DNA of 64,000 nucleotides, from assembly GCA_002269645.1 (NCBI GenBank), contig NIVC01002782.1, positions 33,466 to 97,465 on the forward strand. The letters are read 5' to 3'. Positions 3,986-61,501 of this stretch are shown one piece after another. The translations under genes and the position numbers were made by a program. This stretch comes from Macrostomum lignano (taxonomy: Eukaryota). Position 1 is the stretch's first letter. The number at the start of each line of letters is the position of its first letter. Under the pieces are notes generated by a model. That model was not told the DNA's origin. It searched no databases and saw only the letters and a program-made list of their open reading frames with translations.

Positions 3986-4813
3986 TCCTGTATTTTAATT
4001 TCAACGTCAAACAGCCAACCCTTATCGATTGTAAAGTTTAATTTGTTACGTTTTAGACTTGTTTATCATTGCGTACGTAGCTATACATGTATACTGTAAA
4101 TAAAACAGTCTTCTTAACACGAAAACACCCAAATCATCTTATTAAAAGTGGCAATTTAGCCTTTAATCTTATAAAAATATTACTTATCATATAATAAATA
4201 GATATAGACAGACAAATATATCATTTAAAGATCTGAAAGCATGGCACACGGAATCAGAGTTGAGAAGGCTGATTTAAACATACGAGTATAAATATATCCA
4301 CAAAACACATTTAGAGTTCGGAATAAGTTTGCGTGTAGCTAACAAGATACATTTATATTGACGCAATGTGGTATGTAAGCAGTGTGTTAGCAGCAACTGA
4401 ATGATGTAATTAAATTTGGAGAAAACTGAACACTTAATCAGTATTCACAGTGCGATTACCTTATGAGTGCAACTGTTTACGAGCGTAGTCAGTCAATCTC
4501 CGATATGTACAGTATCATAAACAAGTGTCTACAATATTGAGGGCGAGAGTTGGACAAAAAATGGGACTTGAACCAAAGGTGCAGTCTTTTCTGTTTTGAG
4601 CTCAGCGATTTGGTTCACTTTCATTCACAATCGGTAAAAGAGAGACAAAAAAAGAAAGAATAGAGAGAAAAGAGAGGGAGAGAAGAGAGAAAAGGGAGAA
4701 GAGAGAGAGAAGAGAGAGAGAGAGAGGGGAGAAGAAAGGGAGAAGAGGGAAAAGAGAGATGAGAGTAAACAGGAAGCAGACAGTTGGCACTGGCAGACTG
4801 AGATGCGAGTCTA

Positions 4814-5485
4814 TCATACCTGACCGAGATAGAGCTTCTTGGTGAGGTGGCTGACGACTCCCACAGACCAGGGCGCCATATCGTCAGGCCTCGGCAGCTG
4901 CAGAACCCGCTGGTTCACCAGAGTCATGAGCTGGTGAAACTCCAGCTGGTTGCCAAACTTGGTGACTAAATCGCACAGGGTGACGGTGAACTGTGGGCCG
5001 CCATGCCCCAGCACCAGTGCCGTGTCAGCGAAGACGGGAAGGCCGCTGGCCGCAGCCGCCTGCGACCCATTCGGCAGCCTGTTGGCGTCGCAGCAGATCC
5101 TCGACTTAGTCAGCAGGCCTTCGTTATCGTACTGAACGATGAACACCTTGGGCTTGCAGCGCCACACCGGGGACTTGCTGAACGGCTCCAACAGGCGGTC
5201 AAAGTCCACGTCCAGGCCCGACACGTTGATGCCCCAGCCGTCCAGGGCGTTGTAGCAGCCCGACAGGCCGACCACCAGACAATCGTACACGTCGCAGCTC
5301 TGATCGTCGGCGAGGGTATCGAAGTACTCGTACACCTCCCGGTTGGTCTCGCCACTCAGCACGTTGCGCTCCCGGCGCTCGAACTGGAGGCTGTCGAAGG
5401 CGTCGCGCATCGGCTGCAGTCGGACCCGGGGATTGTCGCGATACAGCACGCAGAGCTTCCGGCTGCACGGGTACTGCTGCGGCAT
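4814..5485 (-). CDS. Catalytically dead caspase-like domain C (p20+p10 fold in one exon)
   Basis: Caspase motifs DCLVVGLSG (cf. DCFVCVILSHG), KPKVFIVQ (cf. GKPKLFFIQ), FADTALV, LEFHQLMTLVNQRV (cf. LEFMHILTRVNRKV), SHLTKKLYL (cf. SMLTKELYF). QACRG is replaced by QYDNE and the SHG His is missing. In-frame acceptor at 5510/5509; CAG|GTATGA donor at 4820. Confidence 0.8.
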   Translation of the reverse strand: MPQQYPCSRKLCVLYRDNPRVRLQPMRDAFDSLQFERRERNVLSGETNREVYEYFDTLADDQSCDVYDCLVVGLSGCYNALDGWGINVSGLDVDFDRLLEPFSKSPVWRCKPKVFIVQYDNEGLLTKSRICCDANRLPNGSQAAAASGLPVFADTALVLGHGGPQFTVTLCDLVTKFGNQLEFHQLMTLVNQRVLQLPRPDDMAPWSVGVVSHLTKKLYLGQV

Positions 5486-5514
5486 GGCCGGGGCAGCGGC
5501 GGGGTGCGGCTGAC

Positions 5515-5560
5515 TGTGTCTGTCTGTTTGCCTGTCTGTCTGTCTGTTTGCCTGTCTGTC

Positions 5561-5635
<75 letters not shown>

Positions 5636-5722
5636 GCCTGTCTGTCTGTTTGCCTGTCTGCCTGCCTGCCTGTCTGTCTGTCTGTCTGTCTGTCTGCCTG
5701 TCTGTTTGCCTGTCTGTCTGCC

Positions 5723-5789
<67 letters not shown>

Positions 5790-5842
5790 TTGTCTGTCTG
5801 TCTGTCTGTCTGACTGCCTGCCCGTCTCTGCCTGTCTGCCTC

Positions 5843-5905
<63 letters not shown>

Positions 5906-5918
5906 GCCTGTCTGTCTT

Positions 5919-5987
<69 letters not shown>

Positions 5988-6035
5988 GTCTGTCTGTGTC
6001 TGCCTTTTTGTTTTTGTCACTGTCTGTCCGTCTGC
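5515..6035. repeat. (CTGT)n/(GACA)n microsatellite
   Basis: Read directly; abuts the acceptor of caspase-like domain C. Confidence 0.95.
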
Positions 6036-6303
6036 CTACCCTTCTGTGTACCATCCTGCCTGTTAATCTACGCGTAAAAAAGTAAACAAGGCTGCCATTT
6101 GTCAATAAAAATCTCTACACAATTGTATTTTACTGATAAAAAAACTTTTTTAAGACTCCGTTTGACTCCATGTCAAAATTATAAAACAGTTTTCCTAAAT
6201 TCGAAAAGACAGCGTACTAACTATGCTACTTATTGTTAGTAAAAAACACAGCATTTGAAATTCGTATTAATGGCACCAGTTTAAAAACCTGCGCCGATCT
6301 AAG

Positions 6304-7911
6304 CTAATAGCGACCGACCCGACCGTCGCTGGCAGGGAACCGCACCAGCTTAGTCAGGGTGCTGAACACCTTCGGCATGGCGATCTCGGCGCAACCGCTG
6401 TCTCCCACCTTGGCCATCAGCTCCAGCACCATGTCCGTCAGCTCGGCGCCGCGGTCAGAATTTTGCTGTCCTGCTGTCAGCATCGCCTTGGCCAGCTCCT
6501 GGGCCGGGTTCGGCACCCGATGGCTGTCCATGAAGGGCAGCGGCGCATACAGGATGTAGAAGTCTGGGCCCAGCTGAAACTCCTGGCAGCGGGTCAGGGA
6601 GATGTACTCTTCCAGCCGCCCGGGGTTCAGCATGAAACCAAAGTGGTGCCGGCGAATTCGCTGCATACAGTCCAGGCGTTCCATTTCGCGCGGGGTGTGC
6701 ACGATGAACAGACGCGGCTTGCCGGCCAGGGCTGGACAGCGGTCCGAGCTAAACCGGCTGAACACCTCCTCGTGCAGGCGAAGTTTCGGGCGCAGCGGGT
6801 TCTCCAGGACGGCGTCGGTTTGGTTGCTAGGGACGCTGTACCTGCTGCTGCCGTAGCGATAGTAGCCGGAGTCCATGCCCTGCAGAGCGGGGATGGGATT
6901 TTGGGTCAGGGGATTGCGTGTCAGGGGATTGTGGGTCAGGGGATTGTGGGTCAGGGGATTGCAGGTCAGGGGATTGCGGGTCAGGGGATTGTGGGTCAGG
7001 TGATTGTGGGTCAGGGGATTGAGGGTCAGGGCCATTGTGGGTCAGGGGATTGTGTGTCAGGGGATTGCGGGTCCGGGGATTGTGGGTCAGGGGATTGTGG
7101 GTTAGGGAATTGTGGGTCAGGGATTGCGGGTCAGGGGATTGCGGGTCAGGAGATTGTGGGTCAGGGGATTTTGGGTCAGGTGATTGTGGGTCAGGGGATT
7201 GAGGGTCAGGGGATTGTGGGTCAGGGCCATTGTGGGTCAGGGGATTGTGGGTCAGGGGATTGCGGGTCCGGGGATTGTGGGTCAGGGGATTGTGGGTTAG
7301 GGAATTGTGGGTCAGGGATTGTGGGTCAGGGGATTGTGGGTCAGGGATTGAGGGTCAGGGGATTGTGGGTCAGGGATTGTGGGTCAGGTGATTGTGGGTC
7401 AGGGATTGTGGGTCAGGGATTGTGGGTCAAAGGATTGTGGGTCAGGTGATTGTGGGTCAGGGATTGTGGGTCAGGGGATTGTGAGCAGGATTTCGATTAA
7501 GAAGCGAATGCATTAACAGCCCACCTGCTCCGACCTGACGCCCGGGTGAACCACCCCCGACGGCGGCGTCAGAAGGAAGCCGTACTCGCAGATCAGGATG
7601 ACCACCAGACAGTCCAGCGGGTTGTGTTCGGCTGACGCTGCCAGCCGGCCGAGCTCAGAGTTCACCGACCCGGAGTTCACGTCGTCCAACCGGACGATTC
7701 GTTGCTTGTCGAAGCCGAGGCCCAGCAGGGCGCGCTCGTAGTCTTCGGCCCGGGCCGGCAGGTCGGCTTTGAAGGGCGGTGAACAGTCGCCGAATTTCAT
7801 GGTGGCGATGAGGCAGTGGCCTCGTCTGGACAGCGGGTAGGCAGCCAGCAGCTCGTCGGGATCCTGCTGCATGTGGGTGCCGGGTCGGACTGCAGCAAGG
7901 GTTGGAGGCAT
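6304..7911 (-). CDS. Catalytically dead caspase-like domain B; exons 7911 (or acceptor at 7889)-7525 and 6879-6304
   Basis: YPLSRRGHCLI, ALLGLGF, HNPLDCLVVILICEYG (no SHG), CPALAGKPRLFIVHTPRE (QACRG replaced by HTPRE), PDFYILYA, STLTKLVRF. Phase-0 intron CAG|GTGGGC...CTGCAG|GGC joins RSEQ to GMDS in frame. Confidence 0.8.
6890..7490. repeat. 15-bp minisatellite (GGGTCAGGGGATTGT), intronic
   Basis: Read directly; fills the intron of domain B. Confidence 0.95.
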
Positions 7912-7924
7912 TTAGGATCAGGGT

Positions 7925-8620
7925 TGGGCTGTGGGTCATTCATCACGGGTCAGTGGGTCATTCACTGTGGGTCGACAGTGGGTCATTCACTGTGGGTCGA
8001 GAGCAGGTCATTCACTGTGGGTCGACAGTGGGCCAGTCATCATGGGTCAGTGGGTCAATCATCATGGGTCAGTGGGTCATTCGTCATGGGTCAGTGGGTC
8101 AGTCATCATGGGTCAGTGGGTCAGTCATCATGGGTCAGTGGGTCAGTCATCATGGATCAGTGGGTCATTCGTCATGGGTCAGTGGATCATTCATTGTGAG
8201 TCGACAGTGAGCCAGCGGTCATGGGTCAGTGGGTCAGTCATCATGGGTCAGTGAGCCAGTGGTCATGGGTCAGTGTGCCATTCGTCATGGATCAGTGGGT
8301 CATTCACCGTAGGTCAGTGAGCCAGTCATCATGGGTCAGTGAGCCAGTCATCATGGGTCAGTGGGTCAGTCGTCATTGGTCAGTGTGCCATTGGTCAGTG
8401 GGTCATTCACCGTAGGTCAGTGGGCTAGTCATCATGGGTCAGTGGGTCAGTCATCATGGGTTAGTGGGTCAGTCGTCATGGGTCAGTGGGTCAGTCATCA
8501 TGGGTCAGTGGGTCATTCGTAATGGGTCAGTGGGTCCTCCTGCTCTTCCATCACGGGTCATTGGGTCATTTATCATAGGTCAGTAAGTAGATCATTCGTC
8601 TCAGGTCATGGGTATTGTGG
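7925..8620. repeat. Degenerate GGGTCAGT/CATCATGGGTCAGT minisatellite
   Basis: Read directly; lies between caspase-like domains A and B. Confidence 0.9.
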
Positions 8621-8804
8621 GGTCACTGACTCATTAATTATAAATCGCAACAAAACTATTGAAATGTGAAAAAGATCACTTGGCAAGGCACTATATATTT
8701 ATAAATTTTCAGACCGGAACAGCCAGTGGAAGAGGCGAGATTATGTATAAAAGTCCTCTACTATAAATTCTCTAATATAAGTCCTCTAATAGATACAGGG
8801 TATT

Positions 8805-10300
8805 CTATCGATAAATACTTGTACTCATAAGGTACAGCGGTTTCAGCAGAGCCCCGGTGCTGGCAAAGAAGTCCGGACTGACTCCATGCTCAAGCTGCTG
8901 GCTATAGTTCTCGTGAATTCGCTGCACCACATCGAACCGGAAGTCCTGCCTTGCGACCGCCTTGTCCTGCAGGGCAGACCGGACGGCCTCCGTCAGGTGC
9001 TCGCCGGCGCGGATGACCGCAAAGTCGGTCCAACTGGCAGGGAATGTCTCGGAATAGCCGGGGCCGATTGGGCCCGCGTCCGTGGGGAGCAGCGGCTTCG
9101 TGCGGCTCACCTGCGCGAGGGGGAGGCTAAGTAGGTCAAGTCAGGGTCAGACCAGGGTCAGGTCAGGGTCAGGTAGGTCAGGGTTAGGTAGGTTGGAGTC
9201 AGGTAGGTAGGGTCAGGTAGGTTAGGGTCAGGTAGGTCAGGGTCAGGTAGGTTAGGGTCAGGTCAGGGTCAGGTCAGGGTCAGTTCTGTCAGGTCAGGGT
9301 CAGGTAGGTCACGGTCAGGTCAAGGTCAAATAGGCCAGGTCAGATCATGTAGGTCAGGGTCAGGTCATGATCAGGTGTGTCAAGGCAGGTAGGTCAGGTC
9401 AGAGTCACAGAGGTCAAGGTCACAGACCTGGTAGTCAGGTCAGGGTTGGGTTAATTCAGGTCTAGGTCAGGGTTGGGTTAATTCAGGTCTAGGTCAGGGT
9501 TGGGTTAATTCAGGTCTAGGTCAGGGTTGGGTTAATTCAGGTCTAGGTCAGGGTTGGGTTAATTCAGGTCTAGGTCAGGGTTGGGTTAATTCAGGTCTAG
9601 GTCAGGGTTGGGTTAATTCAGGTCTAGTTCAGGTAGATCAGGTCATGGTTAGTCAGGTAAATTAGATCTGGGTCAAGTAAGTTGAGGTCAGGTACATGTA
9701 TTTCAGGATCAGGTATGTTAGGTAAAGAATGCAATATCATCTGGCCATACCTAGTAAGGTTATATAAGGTTCATAAGAAAGATGGGACTAAAGTAAAATG
9801 AGTTATGAAACATAAGGTTAGTAAGGTCATGATTTATAAAATTCTAATTGGGTTACAATAAAAAGTATTTTAAAAATGTAAAATGTTGGATTTTAACTAG
9901 GCTTATACATTTACAAAAAAAATTAACCAGCCAGGTGGGTCATTCTCACCTGAAAAAAGAAAATCTTTGGCTTTCCTTTCCACTGAGTGGATGTCATAAA
10001 TGGTTCAATAACTGAGTGAAAATCAAATGGTGCTCCATTGATAGTCAGTTGATAATTGCATAGGCAGCAGCCAGCAAAGTACAAAACAAAACAGCTTCCA
10101 GTCTCATTGGCATATTTCATGAGCTCTGTACTTAGCCAGTCATCGGCCAGTCCATTAGGCAGGTCTTGGTATTTAGTTCTAAAGCCAAGACTTTCAAATA
10201 TTGAAGGAATTCCATTCAATGAAGCTAGTTGCCAGTCCCGAATAACAAGGCAGATTCTTTGGCCAGTATGAGTGTCATAGGGCTCAACTGAACCAGCCAT
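8805..10300 (-). CDS. Catalytically dead caspase-like domain A; exons 10300-9950 and 9110-8805 (218 aa)
   Basis: RICLVI, FESLGF, SCFVLYFAG (no SHG), WKGKPKIFFFQ|VSRT (QACRG becomes QVSRT), WTDFAVI, ALLKPLYL. Phase-0 intron CAG|GTGAGA...GCGCAG|GTG. Confidence 0.8.
9130..9700. repeat. GGTCAG-rich intronic repeat with a 27-bp core (GGTCAGGGTTGGGTTAATTCAGGTCTA)
   Basis: Period 27 between 9438 and about 9625, with degenerate flanks. Confidence 0.9.
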
Positions 10301-11446
10301 GCTTTGGTTGATTAAAGCTTATTATATTATTTGATTGTTTGAGTTGGTATTTGATATATACTTAGTTCTGAAATATCCAATAATTTATGAATTAAGACAC
10401 TATTAGATACATCCATTACTAAAAATAGTATCAGCTAAACATGAGAATAATGTTTATAATATAGTATAACATTCATTAGTCTTTTATCTGAAACTATTTT
10501 TTGCATATTTTAACTCCTATTGACAATAAAAGTATGTATTAAAAAATTTCTATTACCTTAAAATGCACAAGGCCAAGGGTAGTGTAATAATCATTAATGT
10601 AGATATTATTCTTTTATCTCTTTAAATTTGATTTCAAACCTCAACTTGATTAAGAAAAAAGGTGTTTGCTAGAATATTAACTTAGTCTAATTGAATGTAT
10701 TTAAAAAACTAATTATTATTGCTACCAGAAATATTGAATGGGCCAGTGGGCCTAAAAACATAACAATTTAAAATACAAACATGATAACAACTTTTTCAAG
10801 TCAAGAAATTACATTTCTAAATACAAAGGCTCTAAAATCAACATATATACATTAATAACAAACAAAAGTCATCATTTCTAAAAAATAAGATCCTGTTAAT
10901 TCATAACTGGTATCAAGAATTTTTGTAATAGACATTTTAAACCTAGTTTTCACGTTTAATATATATTTCGAAACGTTCTAGAGTGTTTTCTTTTAACCTT
11001 TATAAAAATTACTATTTATAATATATTTCCATTCCACTTCTTTATATATTTATAAAACGTACAAAGCGTTAAAGAACGCGGTACTAAAGATATTATTAAT
11101 CCTTCGCTAATCTTGTTACAAAATCGCGTCTTTCGTGGAAAGTCGCCTTTTTGAAATACTAAAATTGTAGTTCCGCGTTTTTTCTTAAACTAACAAATTT
11201 TTATATATCCAACTCAGCTAGCAATGTTAAATTGACCAAAATGACTTAAAATACAAAATATAAGTTAGTCAAAATATAAAAAGCAAAAATAACCTGAATT
11301 TTCATTTAAAGACTTTAAATTGTGTGAAAGGAAAACTCCGAGTGGGAATCACATTGCTGTCGCAGTTTGGAAAGACCTTTGTTAGAAAAGTAGCAACTTA
11401 TATATTACTACATGTAATATATTTTTAAACTGTTAAATTAGCAGGG

Positions 11447-12340: not shown

Positions 12341-15273
12341 TCAAATCAGGTGGAAATGTTTCAGACTGTTGCGCAGGTGCACCAGCTCGCGATCGATGCT
12401 GTCCAACTTCTGCTCGAGCAGCTCCTGGCCAATTCGAGTTTCGGGGTTCATGAGAATCGTGAATGAAGATGTTTGGCATGTATGTAGCGGGACACGAGGG
12501 TTGCGGGGCACCCTGGGCGCAACGCCTTCAGCGAAATCAATACACATCCACCTGCCCATTCCGCTGACTCTCTGTCTTGGGGGTTGGCCCTCACGGGTGT
12601 AAATCGCGCAACAACTGGTTATCGTGATTGATACAGGTAAAGAGTAATTACAGTCTTACAGCGTGTTAGAAAATCGATTACAAAATGATAGATTGTATAA
12701 ATAATAAAGTTTGCAAGTTGATCATGATGACTCTAGCAGCTAAACTTGTCCGCAACCGTCACCTACGTGAGGCCTTTTTTGTCCAGTCAGAGAGATTCGC
12801 ACTACTTTTTTAATCCTGCGACTCTGAGTGAAGGTTTGGAAAAATTTTTCAAATAGGTTTCTGTTTAAAATACGATTAATACTACTTAGTAGAAAATACC
12901 CACAGTAGCTTATTAAGAGTGTCAGGAACTTTTATAAAAATGTAATAATCAAGAAATTATTTATGAACTATGTAATTTATTAAAGATGTAACTTTAAAAT
13001 TATGAAATTTATGAATTATGAGCTTTGATATTGAGATAATTATGGCTTATGGAAAAATGAATTACGAATTTGATGATTCTGAAAGCATTAAATATACAAT
13101 TTAGGAATTATTATGAAATTTATGACCATAAACTTTATGAATTATGCAATTATGGAATTCAAGAAACTCAATTGTAGATGGCAGCCAGACCTGATCCCGC
13201 ACGCTGTGCCAAGTGTGATGCGCAGAGTCGGTCCGGGGCACCCTAGTCAGGGCAGCCTCAACCTCGCGCCGTTCCACTTGCAGACAGTCGTAGCGCCGCT
13301 CCAGTTCAGCGGGATCGCCCGGCAAGTCAAGAGCGTCTGCGGTGTCGATGATTCTCCGGCGCTCCAGATCGGCCAGAGAACGGCGCAGACTGTCGGCGGC
13401 GGCGTCTCCTGCTACCGTTTGAGCCTAAAATTAGTAGGTAGGAATAATGTACTGCTTATAATTAGCACACAGATAGATTATAAACTACTGACTGCACTAC
13501 TTACAGTAGAAATATTAGCACACAGATAGATTATAAACTACTGACTGCGCTACTTACAGTAGAAATATTAGCACACAGATAGATTATAAACTACTGACTG
13601 CACTACTTACAGTAGAAATATTAGCACACAGATAGATTATAAACTACTGACTGCGCTACTTACAGTAGAAATACTAGCACACAGATAAATTATAAGCTAC
13701 TGACTGCACTACTTACAGTAGAAATATTAGCACACAGATAGATTATAAGCTACTGACTGCACTACTTACAGTAGAAATATTAGCACACAGATAGATTATA
13801 AACTACTGACTGCGCTACTTACAGTAGAAATATTAGCACACAGATAGATCGTTTGCAGTTCAACAACTTGACGATTTTTCCTCACCTGTTGTTCGGCCGC
13901 ATCGCCTTCGTCCCCGCCGACAGCTATCATAGAGACTCGCCTGTTGCTGCTCCGATTTCGCAGGTACTGCAGCTCGGCCTCCGCAGCTGTCAGTCGGCCC
14001 AGCAGACTGTCGCACAGGTGCCGACTGCGGGCCAGTTGGTTCTCCGCTAGCGCCAGCTCGCGCTCTTTGGCAGCCAGCGCCAAATGGAGTCGAGCTAATT
14101 CGTCTGCTTCGGAGCCTACAGAAGCGCCGCTGTTTGGAATTGGCTGGGCCTCGGTTGCCAAGCTGGCGGGCTGCGAGCAGGTGAGTAAAGAGACTCTTGC
14201 GCCACTTTACTTTTACCTAATCTTGGCGCCATTCCTGTCACTCCTTGGCGCTACTCCTGTCACTCCCTGGCGCCATTCCTGTCACTCCTTGGCGCCCCTC
14301 CTGTCACTCCTTGGCGCCATTACTGTCACTCCTTGGCGCCATTACTGTCACACCTTGGCGCCATTCCTGTCACTCCTTGGCGCCCCTCCTATCACACCTT
14401 GGCGCCATTCCTGTCACTCCAATTGGTCAACCTAAGCGCTCACCTCAGCCAGGTGATCGCACAGGTTGCGCCTCTCCTCTGTGCTGATTGGGGTCAGATC
14501 TGGAATTAAAAAAAACCAGCTATTACAGGTGGCCAAAAGTTTTTTGTCAATTTTTACAGGCAGTTTTAAGTTCACAAGGCAATCCAAGACAGTTGGGATA
14601 TTCAACATTATTTCAAGAAGGTCGAGCTCCTGGACCTAAATATTATCAAAAGCAGGGTTATGGAAATTTTCAATTGAAAATTTCAACTACTTGCCTCCCG
14701 AGCCCTTGGACTTGCGATTGGTGGCCAATCCGGGGTCATCAGCAATGGCGCTCCTGTGATTGGCAAGCTGCTCGTCAAGTAGGCGACGCTCTGTAGCCAG
14801 GTTTCGCCTTACAGTATTCTGCAAAAGAAATAATTTTCGCGCAGATATCGATTTAAGCTACTGTTAGTAGAAATATAGAAACACACATGAATAAATATAC
14901 ATTTGCAATCTAAAAAGCTAACCTGCAATTCGCGCAGCTCATTACAGTGCTGCTCCGTTTTCTGACACACGTAGGCTTGGTGGCGGCTGTTCAACTGGTT
15001 GAATACCCGATCCCATTGCTCCTGGAAGCAGATTGTTTGCAAATGCTTAAAGATCACTGAAGATTAAGTTTTACTATAATTAAAATTGAAACAGGCAACC
15101 CAGTTATTTACCTCGCTGCAGTCTTTTGCAGCAGTTTTAATGCACATAAGAGCAGTGGGATTGTCCTGCACAATGGCCTCCTTAAGGCGATGCAAAAGTG
15201 AATTGTCTGCATGGGCATCAGTGTGGCTACCAGCTAAATTGTGCTGTGTTGCTCTACTGCTCTTAGTTGTCAT
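12341..15273 (-). CDS. MPHOSPH9: MPHOSPH9-like coiled-coil protein (about 343 aa); exons 15273-15112, 15021-14923, 14818-14691, 14483-14444, 14170-13886, 13424-13191, 12424-12341
   Basis: All exons have GT/AG ends and consistent phases (1032 nt). The C-terminus ERREVEAALTRVP...DQELLEQKLDSIDRELVHLRNSLKHFHLI resembles the MPHOSPH9 C-terminus as I recall it (IESALSRMP...NQEALEDRLERINRELGSVRMTLKKFHVL). The start codon is uncertain. Confidence 0.65.
13460..13850. repeat. 53-bp minisatellite, about 7.5 copies, intronic
   Basis: TTAGCACAC at 13462 and 13515 gives period 53. Confidence 0.95.
14220..14420. repeat. 22-bp minisatellite (CCTTGGCGCCATTCCTGTCACT), intronic
   Basis: About 9 copies read directly. 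Confidence 0.95.
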
Positions 15274-17954
15274 TGCAAAGGCTGAAATACCAAACTGATT
15301 TTTATTGACAATAGTTAAGCAAGTTAGGCAAAGGAGGGTAGAGAAAAGAGAAACCAAGAAGAAAAAAGAAAAAAAGAAAAGAAAAGATAATATATAATGA
15401 AATTAAAAGTAAATATAAACCTTTAACATGTTAGATTACTATCAAAAATTTGAAAGGACTTATAAACTAGATATTTCATTTTCATTTGGTAAGTTGGGGC
15501 TATCAAGGGGCCCTGCGCATCAGCCCTGGGGAGGGCTCTTATGCAACTAATTTATTTTAGTTTCCAGTTTGAGCGATACATTAAGTATTTTGTTCGAGAA
15601 ATAAAACAAATATTTTCTAATAATACAATGATGCCATTTAAAAACTTAAAACAAATAATAGGGTACAATTAATCAATATAAAGTCAATTTAAAGCAAATG
15701 GTTGAAGTATTGAGTAAAACAAATAAATATAAATAAATATGATTGATAAAACTAAAACAAATATTGGGGTGTAAATATGTACAGTGAATCACAAAGCAGT
15801 GATGTTTTGAGTGTTTTGGTTTAAAAATGGAGGCCAGCTTCTTCACTACTAATGAGAGTAGGTAGACACAGCTATGATATAGGAACCTGCCTATGTTAGT
15901 TAACCTTACGAAAACGAAGGATTCCCTGGGAATACTTGGAGAACACCGTAAGTAGAGAGGTCCCAAACCCACAGTTGAGGGTTGAGCAAATTTTGTTAAT
16001 CATCAAACCAGACGCAACAGCATCCCAACAAAGCAAGCCCAATTGGTAAGTTCAACATTCAGATATCCTAACTTTGTGATAATTATGTGTAGTGGACCTG
16101 GCCCCACAATAAACAGCATTTTGGGTGAATAATGTACTTATTAAGAGGACTTATAAGCTAGATAGAAAGGTTTGGGGGCTATATATATAGTTTTGCAAAT
16201 AAGAGTTTGCAAAACCTTGATGCTTGATCAGGGGTGGACTTAGATAGAAATGCAAAGGGCATATGCCCCTATTAGTTTTTTCATCCTAGGTAAAAAATTG
16301 GTTAAATAATAATATTATATCTTTATATATATAACTTATAAGTTTGATAGGGTACCCCCTGCCCCATCAAAAATGTTTTGTATCTATGACTATATCTAGC
16401 CCTAATTTAAACCAGATAAAAATGCTTTGATTTTGTTTTCTTGAATTTACCTGTCTTAGGTCATATTAAAACCACTAAGAATATTGAAAAAAGGAATAAT
16501 TATTAAGGAAATATAAAGTATCATTATTGACTAATTCTCAACTTGCTAACTGTGAATTTATCTATATAACTTGTATAAATCTATATCTATATATAAAACT
16601 ATAAATCTAAAGCTTAGACTATTCTGTGACTCTCTGCTACATAGAATAGAACCTAATCTTTAACTTACTTTAAACATGAAACTTAGGACTTCATCATTTT
16701 AGCTTATAAAAATGAAGCATAGTAGCAGGGACTACAACTACAAGTATTCTTACTGTGACTTACTCTAGGTTTAAGAACAAAATATTAAATGCACTGCACG
16801 TCTGCAGTCCTATGTAGAATGGAAAAAGTTGGTGACACCGTCATCGATTTCTCATAAAAGAATCATAGGACATAATACAATGTCAAGACTGTAGTGTGGT
16901 GCCTGTGGAAGTGTAGCCGCAGCAGATTTTATAGGTTGGGCCTTCGCCTTTGGACTGCATTTAATAAAATAAAGCTTTACCACTTAAACTATTGAGGCAA
17001 TATACAACAATGGAAGTGGAGTCGACGAGATGCAACGATTACCGAATTTTGAAGCTTAACATGCTCAAGTATTAATTTTATCGTCTTACCGAGTAAGACA
17101 TCGATAGCAAAAGTGCAAAAGTTCAAGATAAATTTTTGTACGCAGCATTACCTAAAGTAAAACAAAGTTTACTTTTTTTGCCTGAAAGGCTTGTCTCAAA
17201 CTTCTCTTTCTGAGTAACAAATAACAAGCTATTGATTAGAATTTTTTCAGTATTTTTTGTTAGTATGATTCTATATGCAAATTAGAGTCAGCATATTATT
17301 TGACCGGCTTACATTCTTTTAATTTGCACAGCGAAGAAAGTTTTAAAAGCTTCATGTTATGTAATTGTTGAACGCGGTTTTCTTTCTTTGATCCAGTTGT
17401 TTTATCTTCTGTCTTGTCTGTCTGTCTGACACAGAAGATAATAGATACAAAGCAATTTAACTTAATATAGAATAGTCATTTTATTATTTTATTATTTTAT
17501 TCTGTTGACTGTGTTGTCAAAAAACTAAATATTATCATTTAGTCGAGGCTAAAGCATATCAAAACAATAAGTTTTATAGTTCATGGCTTTTTTCATCAGC
17601 TCATTCAAGTTAAAAAATATTGATATCACCCACTCAATTGAAACGTGATGAAAGATTTTATTGTGTTGCCAAACAATTTCTACATTTTTTATCTTCATGT
17701 GTAGACTATATTTAAAAAATTAAAATAAATATGGTCTTTTAAAAAATCAGCATTGTTGTTTTCAGTTATGATTTTAGCTCGTAATGTATAAGAAAATATA
17801 ACTTTAATAGTTGAAAGTCGTTTATTATTGATTAAATTAAGACATCTTGGCTTTTTTGTCCTCTTTCTCTTGAGCAACAGAATCACCGATCTTACTTTTC
17901 TGCTTTGAATTTCAACTCAAAAAAGCAAAGCAACACCAGCGGCTGGCCCGCCAA

Positions 17955-31420: not shown

Positions 31421-34338
31421 CGAATCTGAAATCTGGTGCTGCACCGGCGGCGACGGCGGCACCTCTGGCAGGCCGCCGGTAGACCATGGAGCGGCAGCGG
31501 CCCCCCAGCAGCCGGCTGAAAACGCGGGTGTCTCATCTGGCGCAGGAGCCGAGCAGGACCGGCTGTAGGCTGGGGGAGGCTCGGCGGCTGCTGGCACGGC
31601 TGGCAGCTGGCAGAGCTGATGCGGCTTGCGCTGCAGGTCCCGGCCGCTCCTCCCAAACCGGCCGCCGCCGCCGCCGCCGCCGCTGCGCCGGTCACCGGGC
31701 GCCGCCTGCCGCGGCTTAGTGCTGCCGAATTTTGTCTGGGCGAAGGCGGCCGCGGTGAAGAAGCTGGACGACGAGCTGCTCTTCTGCACCAGTTGCATCT
31801 GAGGCTGCTGAGGCCGCTGCTGAGACCGCTGGCTGTACAGCGTCAGGAGCGGCCCTGAGAGGGGTGTGAGATGTAGGGTGTGAGATGTAGGGTGTGAGAT
31901 GTAGGGTGTGAGATGTAGGGTGTGAGATGTAGGGTGTGAGATGTAGGGTGTGAGATGTAGGGTGTGAGATGTAGGGTGTGAGATGTAGGGTGTGAGATGT
32001 AGGGTGTGAGATGTAGGGTGTGAGATGTAGGGTGTGAGATGTAGGGTGTGAGATGTAGGGTGTGAGATGTAGGGTGTGAGATGTAGGATGTGAGATGTAG
32101 GGTGTGAGATGTAGGGTGTGAGATGTAGGATGTGAGATGTAGGGTGTGAGATGTAGGGTGTGAGATGTAGGGTGTGAGATGTAGGGTGTGAGATGTAGGG
32201 TGTGAGATGTAGGATGTGAGATGTAGGGTGTGAGATGTAGGGTGTGAGATGTAGGGCGTGAGATGTAGGGTGTGAGATGTAGGGTGTGAGATGTAGGGTG
32301 TGAGATGTAGGGTGTGAGATGTAGGGTGTGAGATGTAGGGTGTGAGATGTAGGGTGTGAGATGTAGGGTGTGAGATGTAGGGTGTGAGATGTAGGGTGTG
32401 AGATGTAGGGTGTGAGATGTAGGGTGTGAGATGTAGGATGTGAGATGTAGGGTGTGAGATGTAGGGTGTGAGATGTAGGGTGTGAGATGTAGGATGTGAG
32501 ATGTAGGGTGTGAGATGTAGGGTGTGAGATGTAGGATGTGAGATGTAGGGTGTGTGATGTAGGGTGTGAGATGTAGGGTGTGAGATGTAGGGTATGAGAT
32601 GTAGAGTGTGAGATGTAGGGTGTGAGATATAAGGTGTGAGATGTAGGGTGTTAGATGTAGGGTGTGAGATATAAGGTGTGAGATGTAGGGTGTGAGATGT
32701 AGGGTGTGAGGTGTAGGGTATGAGATGTAAGGTGTGAGATGTAGGGTGTGAGATGTAGGGTGTTAGATGTAGGGTGTGAGATGTAGGGTGTGAGATGTAG
32801 GGTGTGAGGTGTAGGGTATGAGATGTAAGGTGTGAGATGTAGGGTGTGAGATGTAGGGTGTGAGATGTAGGGTGTGAGATGTAGGGTGTGAGGTGTAGGG
32901 TGTGAGATGTAGGGTGTGAGATGTAAGGTGTGAGGTAGGTAAGAGGTAGGATGTGAGAGGTAGGATGTGAGAGGTAGGATGTGAGAGGTAGGTGGTGAGA
33001 TGTAGAGTGTGAGGTAGGATGTGAGGCAGAGTTGAGTTTGGGTGTGGATGTAGGTGAAATCAAGGACAACTTAAGTTGAAGGACACAACACTCAAAATCT
33101 ATGGCAATTTTTTGAAGGCAAAAAAATTAACAAAATCCCAATTTTCTGAACGAAAAGCTTTATGAATATCAATAGAGCTATAAGAAAGGCACAACATATC
33201 AAATGATGAACAGTGAGTCTGCCTTCTATCGAAAGCAATATCAAATTTTTGTGCTGAAAAAATGAAAAATTCTTATCTCCGTAGTGAATTTTTCGGCGAA
33301 AAATTGCCTTCAAAAATTACCATAGATTTTGAGTGTTGTGTCCTTCAACTTAAGTTGTCCTAGGGTGAAAGTTACGAGTAGGTGAGTTTCAGGTTAGAGG
33401 TAGGTGAGAGGTAGGTTAGAGGTAGGTGAGAGGTAGGTTAGAGGTAGGTGAGAGGTAGGTTAGAGGTAGGTGAGAGGTAGGTTAGAGGTAGGTTAGAGGT
33501 AGGTGAGAGGTAGGTGAAAGGTAGGTTAGAGGTAGGTGAGAGGTAGGTTAGAGGTAGGTTAGAGGTAGGTTAGAGGTAGGTGAGAGGTAGGTTAGAGGTA
33601 GGTGAGAGTTAGGTTAAAGGTAGGTGAGAGGTAGGTTAGAGGTAGGTGAGAGGTAGGTTAGAGGTAGGTGAGAGGTAGGTTAGAGGTAGGTGAGAGGTAG
33701 GTTAGAGGTAGGTGAGAGGTAGGTTAGAGGTAGGTGAGAGGTAGGTTAGAGGTAGGTGAGAGGTAGGTTAGAGGTAGGTGAGAGGTAGGTTAGAGGTAGG
33801 TGAGAGGTAGGTTAGAGGTAGGTGAGAGGTAGGTTAGAGGTAGGTGAGAGGTAGGTTAGAGGTAGGTGAGAGGTCTGAGAGGTAGATGAGAGGTAGGTGA
33901 GAGGTCTGAGAGGTAGGTGAGAGGTAGGTGAGAGGTCTGAGAGGTAGGTAAGAGTGTGCGCTCGGCCTAGTCCTCGTCAGCGCACATTCATGGCGGTGAA
34001 GCCGCCCCAGGCTCACCCTTCTCCCCCACCCGGTAGGTGACCTCGCCGGGGTCAATCCACAGCGTCAGACCGTCGGGCAGCACCGCCAGGATCTCGGCGA
34101 CGTCCAAGCCGACCTCCCTGGCCGAGGCCAGCAGCAGTTCATCCGGTCGGCTTCCGGTGATTGACAGGCAACGGAAACCGGCGCCCCGGAGCGGCTGGTC
34201 CTCATGCCAGTGGCCGGTGAACTTCAGTCGAATCGCCTTCTCTAGCTCCTCGGACAGCAGCTGGACTCGGCGACGAGGCACTCGGCCGAACAGAAAGGAG
34301 GCGATGAACCCGACAGCTGCGGCAACCTCGGAGTCCAT
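31406..34338 (-). CDS. TOB: Tob (BTG/Tob anti-proliferative family), 256 aa; exons 34338-34017 and 31854-31406
   Basis: BTG domain MDSEVAAAVGFI...KFTGHW...GAGFRCL...LTLWIDPGEVTYRVGEKG|PLLTLY (phase-1 intron) plus the Tob-specific motif FTAAAFAQTKFGSTK. The true 3' end could include one more exon. Confidence 0.9.
31860..33050. repeat. 14-bp minisatellite (GGGTGTGAGATGTA) in the Tob intron
   Basis: Read directly, about 80 copies. Confidence 0.95.
33061..33363. mobile_element. MITE with about 60-bp TIRs starting C(A/T)AGGACAACTTAAGTTG, P-superfamily-like ends
   Basis: 33061-33121 matches the reverse complement of 33304-33363 with 2 mismatches and 1 indel; GGTGAAA is duplicated at 33053-33059 and 33364-33370. 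Confidence 0.85.
33375..33950. repeat. 11-bp alternating minisatellite AGAGGTAGGT(T/G) in the Tob intron
   Basis: Read directly. Confidence 0.95.
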
Positions 34339-34364
34339 GGCGGGCGCGGCGACTGGACTGGAAG

Positions 34365-34805
34365 TTCAATGGATTGCTAGTCTAGCCAACGACTCAATGA
34401 ATCTAAGTGGATTGCTAGCCTAGCCAAATACTCAAAGTATCTGAGTGGATTGCTAGTCTAGCCAATGACTTAATGAATCTAAGTGGATTGCTAGCCTAGC
34501 CAAATACTCAAAGTATCTGAGTGGATTGCTAGTCTAGCCAATGACTCAATGAATCTAAGTGGATTGCTAGTCTAGCCAATGACTCAATGAATCTAAGTGG
34601 ATTGCTAGCCTAGCCAAATACTCAAAGTATCTGAGTGGATTGCTAGTCTAGCCAATGACTCAATGAATCTAAGTGGATTGCTAGTCTAGCCAATGACTCA
34701 ATGAATCTAAGTGGATTGCTGGTCTAGCCAATGACTCAAAGAATCGAAATGGATTGCTAGTCTAGCCAATGACTCAATGAATCTAAGTGGATTGCTAGTC
34801 TAGCT
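34365..34805. repeat. 38-bp minisatellite upstream of the Tob ATG (probably in a 5'UTR intron)
   Basis: TGGATTGCTAG at 34370 and 34408 gives period 38. Confidence 0.9.

Positions 34806-45204: not shown

Positions 45205-61501
<16,297 letters not shown>

Follow-up and report, generated by a model that had tools for sequence, protein, structure and literature searches.

What can genes of the caspase family do once their products have lost the residues needed to cut other proteins? This question is raised by three neighboring genes, here called A, B and C, in the nuclear genome of the free-living and regenerating flatworm Macrostomum lignano (contig NIVC01002782.1 of assembly GCA_002269645.1, Mlig_3_7; the product of C is a verbatim match). 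They follow one another in the same orientation on the minus strand within a 64-kb stretch of this contig, referred to below as the window, and each has its own stop codon. A sequence-only reading of the window had placed three tandem, mutually very divergent pseudocaspases without prodomains at positions 4814–10300, and these limits proved exact: 10300 marks the ATG of A, and 4814 is the final base of the C stop codon. The word tandem holds in that the three units are adjacent, but they are separate genes with their own stops and not domains of one protein. Comparisons of the predicted products support the pseudocaspase interpretation, and we consider it somewhat probable that these prodomain-less, catalytically dead proteins act without proteolysis, by pairing with caspases or with each other.

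The state of the active sites was read from alignments to Protein Data Bank (PDB) entries, from a MAFFT alignment with caspase-3, and from alignment to a hidden Markov model (HMM) of intact caspases. For MAFFT, splitting B into two fragments gave a poorer alignment than leaving it unsplit. By all these routes the catalytic His and Cys are lost in all three proteins, and the sites quoted in the sequence-only reading are present; at the SHG and QACRG positions, A reads AGC(C) and QVSRT, B reads ICEYG and HTPRE, and C reads LSGC and QYDNE. In A, the His column is occupied by Cys (..YFAGCC..) and the Cys motif carries Ser (QVSRT). In B, the His column holds Glu or Tyr (..ILICEYG..), with Pro in the Cys motif (HTPRE). 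The His column of C is filled by Gly (..GLSGC..), and its Cys motif, QYDNEG, carries either Asn or Asp according to the alignment used. Because both catalytic residues are substituted, A, B and C should have no caspase-type cysteine protease activity, and judged from their sequences none of them can be a conventional caspase. In addition, A and C have lost the substrate loop that bears Arg207 (L3); B keeps an Arg at this place (SHRVP). Arg64 falls in an unaligned column of the HMM alignment, and MAFFT gives both A and C an Arg at that position, in an alignment that is uncertain.

Motifs of the caspase core are kept. Residues K154, P155, K/R156 and F158 (KPKxF), as well as the equivalent of caspase-3 Phe143, are present in all three proteins. 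A and C keep the F83, L81 and F78 positions of the FxxLxF helix and the D/SCxV strand; B is unaligned at both sets of columns, and reads LLGLGF and DCLVV, respectively. A motif resembling the LTKxLY of the C-terminal beta6 strand is kept in all three, and in real caspases this strand forms the dimer interface.

The proposed absence of a prodomain is also borne out. Only about 14 residues in A, 17 in B (~30 if translation starts at the ATG at 7911) and 9 in C stand ahead of beta1. No prodomain was found in any of the three proteins, and none carries two N-terminal death effector domains (DEDs) as cFLIP does. A is annotated as a complete open reading frame (ORF), its ATG being preceded, six codons upstream, by a stop, and the 349-residue coiled-coil gene that lies upstream of A gave no death-fold match.

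The caspase fold had been recognized from short motifs, and profile searches, structure prediction and a phylogeny had been suggested as ways to check it. Sequence comparison supports the conclusion that A, B and C are caspase homologs. Against the Peptidase_C14 profile of Pfam (233 positions, cut-off 21.4 bits), B and C pass and A fails: spliced B scored 26.9 bits (E 4.8e-6) over profile positions 26–230, C scored 22.9 bits over nearly the entire domain, and A reached 15.2 bits. A custom HMM was then made from 31 full-length caspase domains with intact SHG and QACxG motifs, chosen from 87 caspase domains that had been cut out of the matches to an A/B/C profile described below, plus human caspase-3. 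This model of intact caspases gave 45.2 bits for C, 40.5 for B and 26.4 for A. In A the alignment was confined to residues 33–120, which belong to exon 1 (25.7 bits, compared with 26.4 for the whole sequence), and in B residues 153–297 of the 307-residue form that starts at ATG 7872 give 28.6 bits. Thus, the proposal of three caspase-fold units stands for B and C and for the half of A encoded by exon 1, but not for the half encoded by exon 2.

Pairwise comparisons and models add further detail. BLASTP aligned A with C over ~140 residues in the large-subunit (p20) half of A (51 bits, E about 1e-12) at 25% identity, and B is barely alignable to A or C by BLAST, as expected from the claim of mutual divergence. 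Searches of PDB sequences with phmmer matched C to the small subunits of caspase-6, caspase-3 and caspase-7 and matched B to the large subunits of ancestral effector caspases, with cFLIP (3h11) among the weak matches; A had no match in the same database. Word-indexed searches with C, with B and with the A/B/C alignment as queries retrieved nothing beyond self matches and near-identical M. lignano entries, so there was no deep alignment for AlphaFold2, and the models were made from alignments of only three sequences. The C model is of low confidence, with a predicted local distance difference test score (pLDDT) of 54.6, but its N-terminal half follows the caspase beta-alpha-beta order, and its top 50 Foldseek matches in PDB are all caspases (best E 2.8e-5, template modeling score 0.43–0.50). 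The A model has a pLDDT of 44.7, which falls below 50 in exon 2, and it retrieved no significant match.

Gene A requires separate consideration. Its exon 2 (residues 118–218) scored 0.5 bits against an HMM of the small subunit (p10), and shuffle tests against the C-terminal halves of C, B, caspase-3 and the first caspase domain of another M. lignano protein, P0010 (described below), gave z<1. The sole caspase resemblance in this exon is its terminal ALLKPLYL, which can be compared with HLTKKLYL in C and MLTKELYF in caspase-3. GC content at third codon positions (GC3) is 0.36 in exon 1 versus 0.74 in exon 2, and exon 1 lies within a block at ~9600–11200 that is mostly 24–41% GC and begins inside the A intron. 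Because only exon 1 is recognizably caspase-like and the two exons differ in composition, A may be a chimeric gene in which a p20-like exon is joined to one that is unrelated or very diverged.

The relatives of these proteins were sought with a HMMER search in which the A/B/C profile was compared to 1.84 billion representative proteins. There were 58 non-self matches at E<=1e-3, and the best ten, which were scanned for domains, all carry Peptidase_C14. Among relatives outside M. lignano, none is closer than ordinary caspases, at ~25% identity. The top non-self match (E 7.8e-12) is P0010, or PAA89054.1 (Mlig030125), an M. lignano protein of 1072 residues that is laid out as a protein kinase, a dead caspase domain, ankyrin repeats and an intact caspase domain. 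The profile matches the first of its caspase domains (residues about 313–565), which reads GCG for SHG and QTHRD for QACRG. This protein is probably the M. lignano caspase with a kinase-like pro-domain described in PMC11463336, a report whose main text does not contain the word "inactive" and in which no mention of the dead domain was found. The best BLAST matches of B include an ankyrin-repeat "Caspase-8" from Schistosoma japonicum (P0017) and the similar proteins P0029, P0032 and P0047.

Many of the profile matches have two or three caspase domains, at least one of them without His and/or Cys. Tandem proteins of this kind are P0011, P0014–P0016, P0019, P0023, P0026, P0035, P0043, P0060, P0061 and P0064, and those whose sources were looked up come from insects and molluscs (P0011 Anabrus, P0014 Leptopilina, P0015 Physella and P0016 Thrips). 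The presence of active-plus-dead tandems in several invertebrate groups suggests that the pairing of dead and live protomers is a recurrent solution. In a neighbor-joining tree, A grouped with C in 65 of 100 bootstrap replicates, and B grouped with the dead domain of Mlig030125 in 27 of 100. However, the distances are saturated (1.7–2.1 substitutions per site) and only the pair of A and C is moderately supported, and thus no claim is made regarding the caspase subfamily from which these genes descend.

Existing annotations agree with the gene models proposed here. The GenBank proteins at A, B and C are 218, 309 and 224 residues long, lengths with which the models accord, and proteins P0005 and P0006 correspond to B. 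Transcript cluster Mlig015211 represents A and Mlig012903 represents B, and in automatic annotation both genes already appear under the label caspase p20 domain protein. Neighboring proteins bear names of the type BOX15_MligNNNNNN. The introns of A and B are canonical GT/AG introns in phase 0. The GenBank annotation rests solely on RNA-seq data, StringTie/TACO and a de novo transcriptome, and its ORFs are TransDecoder calls (PMC5730564). Because the GenBank entries derive from transcripts alone, transcripts of A, B and C are implied, and the concern raised with the sequence-only reading that the genes might be silent is eased accordingly.

How such proteins might act can be sketched as follows. 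A and C would have arisen by local duplication of an ancestral caspase-like gene and would then have diverged rapidly, and B would come from a different caspase lineage that groups weakly with flatworm ankyrin-caspases. Each protein would contact its partner through the conserved beta6 interface, the partner being either an active caspase protomer or another member of the trio, and this pairing could tune caspase activation up or down. The three genes are perhaps co-transcribed, with B resolved by spliced-leader (SL) trans-splicing. The dead domain of Mlig030125 sits in cis with an active one, which fits a pairing role for dead domains, and by analogy to known systems a decoy or dimer-partner role for A, B and C is plausible. 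As a speculation, B might itself be a caspase substrate, since it has ERLD/C where the linker of caspase-3 has ELD/C (the slash marks the cleavage point).

In mammals, nematodes and mosquitoes, dead caspase homologs are known to regulate cell death and inflammation. To our knowledge, no such protein has been reported from flatworms, animals in which regeneration relies on cell death being kept under tight control. The role suggested in the sequence-only reading, in which the three proteins would be decoys or scaffolds for cell death, immunity or regeneration, can reasonably be argued by analogy with cFLIP, CSP-2/3 and CASPS18. The C. elegans proteins CSP-2 and CSP-3 are non-catalytic homologs that bind the caspase zymogen and block autoactivation of CED-3 (PMC5088569). 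A, B and C are likewise non-catalytic caspase homologs, with a sequence relation to the nematode proteins at the family level only. CSP-3 resembles a small subunit only, whereas both halves are present in B and C, and in A only the large-subunit half is recognizable. In the passage of PMC4840389 that cites Bryant et al. (2010), Aedes aegypti CASPS18 is a decoy without a catalytic domain of its own that enhances its paralog CASPS19. As portrayed there, it resembles A, B and C in being a catalytically deficient, lineage-specific caspase paralog; however, it has a known active partner paralog, whereas A, B and C have none within 64 kb, stand as three dead genes in a row, and are far more diverged.

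Two other comparisons are instructive. The long form of cFLIP, cFLIP-L, has a caspase-like domain and heterodimerizes with caspase-8 (PMC11121540). Its likeness to A, B and C lies in a caspase fold with mutated catalytic residues, but cFLIP has tandem DED prodomains and adjoins CASP8, whereas the M. lignano genes have neither a prodomain nor an adjacent active caspase. The dead domain of Mlig030125 comes from the same species and shows similar substitutions and a shortened small-subunit loop, but it is part of a 1072-residue protein with an active caspase, whereas A, B and C are free-standing and only ~25% identical. Similarly, the invertebrate tandem caspases include domains without His and/or Cys, but there the domains are covalently joined, with one or more of them active, whereas A, B and C are separate and all dead. 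Overall, the kind of protein is well known and nothing is overturned. The three genes and the Mlig030125 dead domain are candidates for RNA interference and interaction tests in this transgenic regeneration model.

Several observations weigh against the view that A, B and C are functional pairing partners of caspases. When A, B, C and caspase-3 were used as tblastn queries in the window, only A, B and C were recovered and no active caspase. No ortholog beyond M. lignano emerged from the profile search of 1.84 billion representatives or from the word-indexed searches. The C-terminal half of A is not recognizably caspase-like by either the small-subunit HMM or the shuffle tests; the C model, with its pLDDT of 54.6, is poorly predicted in its small-subunit half; and Foldseek with the A model ranked procaspase-6 fifth, at an E of 0.11. 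The clusters Mlig012903 and Mlig015211 were not found in the M. lignano full texts and supplements that were searched. The three genomic copies of the locus are near-identical, so that the ratio of nonsynonymous to synonymous substitutions is without power and purifying selection is unmeasurable. Finally, no [T/C]TNCAG motif, the form of an SL acceptor in this species, is present upstream of C, where the candidate sites read AGTCAG and ACACAG.

The alternative that survives best, although we regard it as unlikely, is that A, B and C are decaying or functionless duplicates, that is, transcribed relics of caspases that drift and have no part in caspase regulation. Their extreme divergence (~25% identity to anything) is what such an origin would produce, as are the lack of an ortholog among the 1.84 billion representatives, the unrecognizable C-terminal half of A and the large insertions in B, and selection cannot be gauged on near-identical copies. 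However, drift to 25% identity should bring stops or frameshifts, and all five exons are open and the phase-0 introns are kept. Moreover, the core fold and beta6 motifs are kept while the catalytic residues are lost, and the GC pattern across codon positions is that of conserved genes in the window: GC3 is 0.74–0.85, with GC3>GC1>GC2, like the BTG and kinesin-light-chain genes (0.74–0.78), A exon 1 being the exception.

Other copies of the locus bear on the same point. The block of four genes that comprises the coiled-coil gene, A, B and C is found again on two further contigs; the coiled-coil gene accompanies the trio on both contigs that reach that far upstream. On a 213-kb sister contig, the copy is identical in all five exons, with frames intact. 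On the 43-kb contig NIVC01002781.1 (L002, 1–6718), the exons of the copy differ by fourteen 1-bp deletions and by three substitutions, and in its alignment (98.5% identity, 52 gap openings) 1-bp deletions occur in exons and in non-coding DNA without distinction. Such scattered deletions in a copy this similar point to error in an unpolished long-read assembly rather than to decay or pseudogenes, which also accounts for the frameshifted GenBank protein P0003. The GenBank entries that derive from NIVC01002781.1 are a frameshifted "protein" of 313 residues, PAA55242.1, and a 70-residue fragment of A. Taken together, intact frames, retained fold motifs and host-typical codon bias favor, by indirect argument, the view that A, B and C are real coding genes, and neutral evolution, which had been named as grounds for abandoning the sequence-only reading, is likewise argued against only indirectly.

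It is also possible to imagine that A, B and perhaps C are exons of one gene for a tandem pseudocaspase polyprotein, with the stops spliced out, akin to the proteins with several caspase domains known in other invertebrates. This idea is prompted by UniProt models P0002 and P0007, which run from A exon 2 into B (..LYLMST/TVRPGTHMQQ..; here and below, slashes within motifs mark junctions), P0002 ending with ..SDGR, then GT. The fused junction corresponds to a donor, ACAA/GTATTT, at 8818, which is 13 nt ahead of the A stop, and to an acceptor, TTGCAG/CAG. The latter needs an A at 7894, as in the sister-contig allele (L002, 2636–2650); the window has T and reads CTGCAG/TCC, and the change from T to A turns this site into a tandem CAG/CAG acceptor. 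The UniProt model uses the upstream acceptor of the tandem pair and was thus built on the other allele, although CTGCAG/TCC of the window preserves the frame from A to B as well. The spacers between the genes resemble introns, being 650–900 bp of minisatellite, and many of the profile matches carry active and dead caspase domains in tandem.

Nevertheless, we consider a single polyprotein quite improbable. In GenBank, A is a complete ORF of 218 residues that includes the stop region, and it falls in a different transcript cluster (Mlig015211) than B (Mlig012903). The UniProt models stem from a separate, non-GenBank annotation and are without A exon 1. For M. lignano, the donor consensus is GT[G/A]AG, the SL acceptor motif is [T/C]TNCAG, and genes less than 1 kb apart after subtraction of repeats are taken as operon candidates (PMC8629364). 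No candidate fusion donor fits this consensus. In-frame, open GT..AG pairs can be found from A to B in 3 of 10 cases and from B to C in 23 of 70; being frequent by chance and having non-consensus donors, such pairs were rejected as support for a fused A-B-C.

The same spacers can be viewed from the standpoint of an operon. They measure 915 bp (606 bp tandem repeat) and 818 bp (481 bp tandem repeat), and the genes share one strand, which places them within the distance of less than 1 kb used for M. lignano operons. The site CTGCAG/T upstream of B, where the last six intron bases are CTGCAG, fits [T/C]TNCAG, and co-transcription with SL trans-splicing of B is plausible on these grounds. A more elaborate version of the pairing proposal, to which we give little credence, would make the three genes a co-expressed module, possibly an SL operon, that shares its stock with the dead domain of Mlig030125 and whose products act on that protein in trans or assemble with one another as a protease-free signaling platform. 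If this were true, the locus would add to cell-death control a layer specific to this lineage, in a regenerating flatworm without extrinsic apoptosis of the FADD type; the apoptotic network of flatworms reportedly lacks FADD (PMC11463336).

Very doubtful, finally, is a repurposed caspase or hemoglobinase fold that serves as a binding or scaffold module elsewhere or has a different catalytic arrangement: the substitutions differ in each paralog and are not simple knock-outs (in A, Cys stands in for His and Ser for Cys, and C has SGC), A and C lack the substrate loop, and no active caspase gene is linked, but no positive evidence speaks for such a use, and the replacement residues are not conserved among A, B, C and the first domain of P0010, which argues against a common new active site.

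Table 1. Positions of genes A, B and C, their parts and the features between and beside them, numbered along the window (slashes mark splice junctions)
Feature	Position	Strand	Description
Gene A	10300..9950 + 9110..8805	-	2 exons, 218 aa
Gene B	7872 (or 7911)..7525 + 6879..6304	-	2 exons, 307–320 aa
Gene C	5485..4814	-	1 exon, 223 aa
Gene upstream of A	12341–15279	-	349 aa, multi-exon, coiled coil; sub-threshold Fez1 match
A exon 1	9950..10300	-	117 codons, p20-like half; ORF and splice donor CAG/GTGAGA; beta1 QRICLVI, FESLGF, SCFVLYFAGCC replacing ..SHG, KPKIFFFQ
A intron	9111..9949	-	AGGTC-type and 27-bp minisatellites; tandem repeats 9131–9633; acceptor GCGCAG/
A exon 2	8805..9110	-	begins VSRT (Q/VSRT replacing QACRG), ends ..ALLKPLYLMSTSIYR and stop
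A-B spacer minisatellite	7931..8536		22/44/66-bp unit, most of 915-bp spacer
Candidate SL trans-splice acceptor	7889..7896	-	GCTGCAG/T, 17 nt upstream of B ATG; putative use, from sequence
B exon 1	7525..7872	-	starts at first ATG past acceptor; upstream in-frame ATG at 7911; RRGHCLIA, LLGLGF, DCLVVILICEYG replacing ..SHG (read against alignment of ancestral caspase-3/6/7 and caspase-6)
B intron	6880..7524	-	nearly all 15-bp minisatellite (6895–7483); donor CAG/GTGGGC, acceptor CTGCAG/GGC
B exon 2	6304..6879	-	insertion, FSRFSSDRCPALAGKPRLFIVHTPRE (Cys to Pro), ERLDC, DFYILYAP, SHRVP, STLTKLVRF
B-C spacer microsatellite	5517..5997		(TGTC)n / (GACA)n, most of 818-bp spacer
Gene C exon	4814..5485	-	RKLCVLY, FDSLQF, DCLVVGLSGC (no His), KPKVFIVQYDNEG (no Cys), HLTKKLYL

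The DNA between the exons has features of its own. Both introns and both spacers measure 650–915 bp, and each consists mostly of its own tandem repeat. The repeats at 4639–9633 also include an AG-rich tract past C, and repeat tracts yield long spurious ORFs in other frames, such as one of 360 aa at 5003–6085 on the plus strand. The M. lignano genome is reported to be rich in minisatellites (PMC5730564), as is the window. G-rich minisatellites are present at 31862–33025, at 49210–51300 and elsewhere (14-mer x84, 16-mer x131), with GC skew up to 0.85. The window also carries ordinary animal genes, including a BTG-family exon at 33991–34365 (minus strand; Pfam E 4e-32) and a gene with tetratricopeptide repeats resembling kinesin light chain at 56159–59753 (minus strand).

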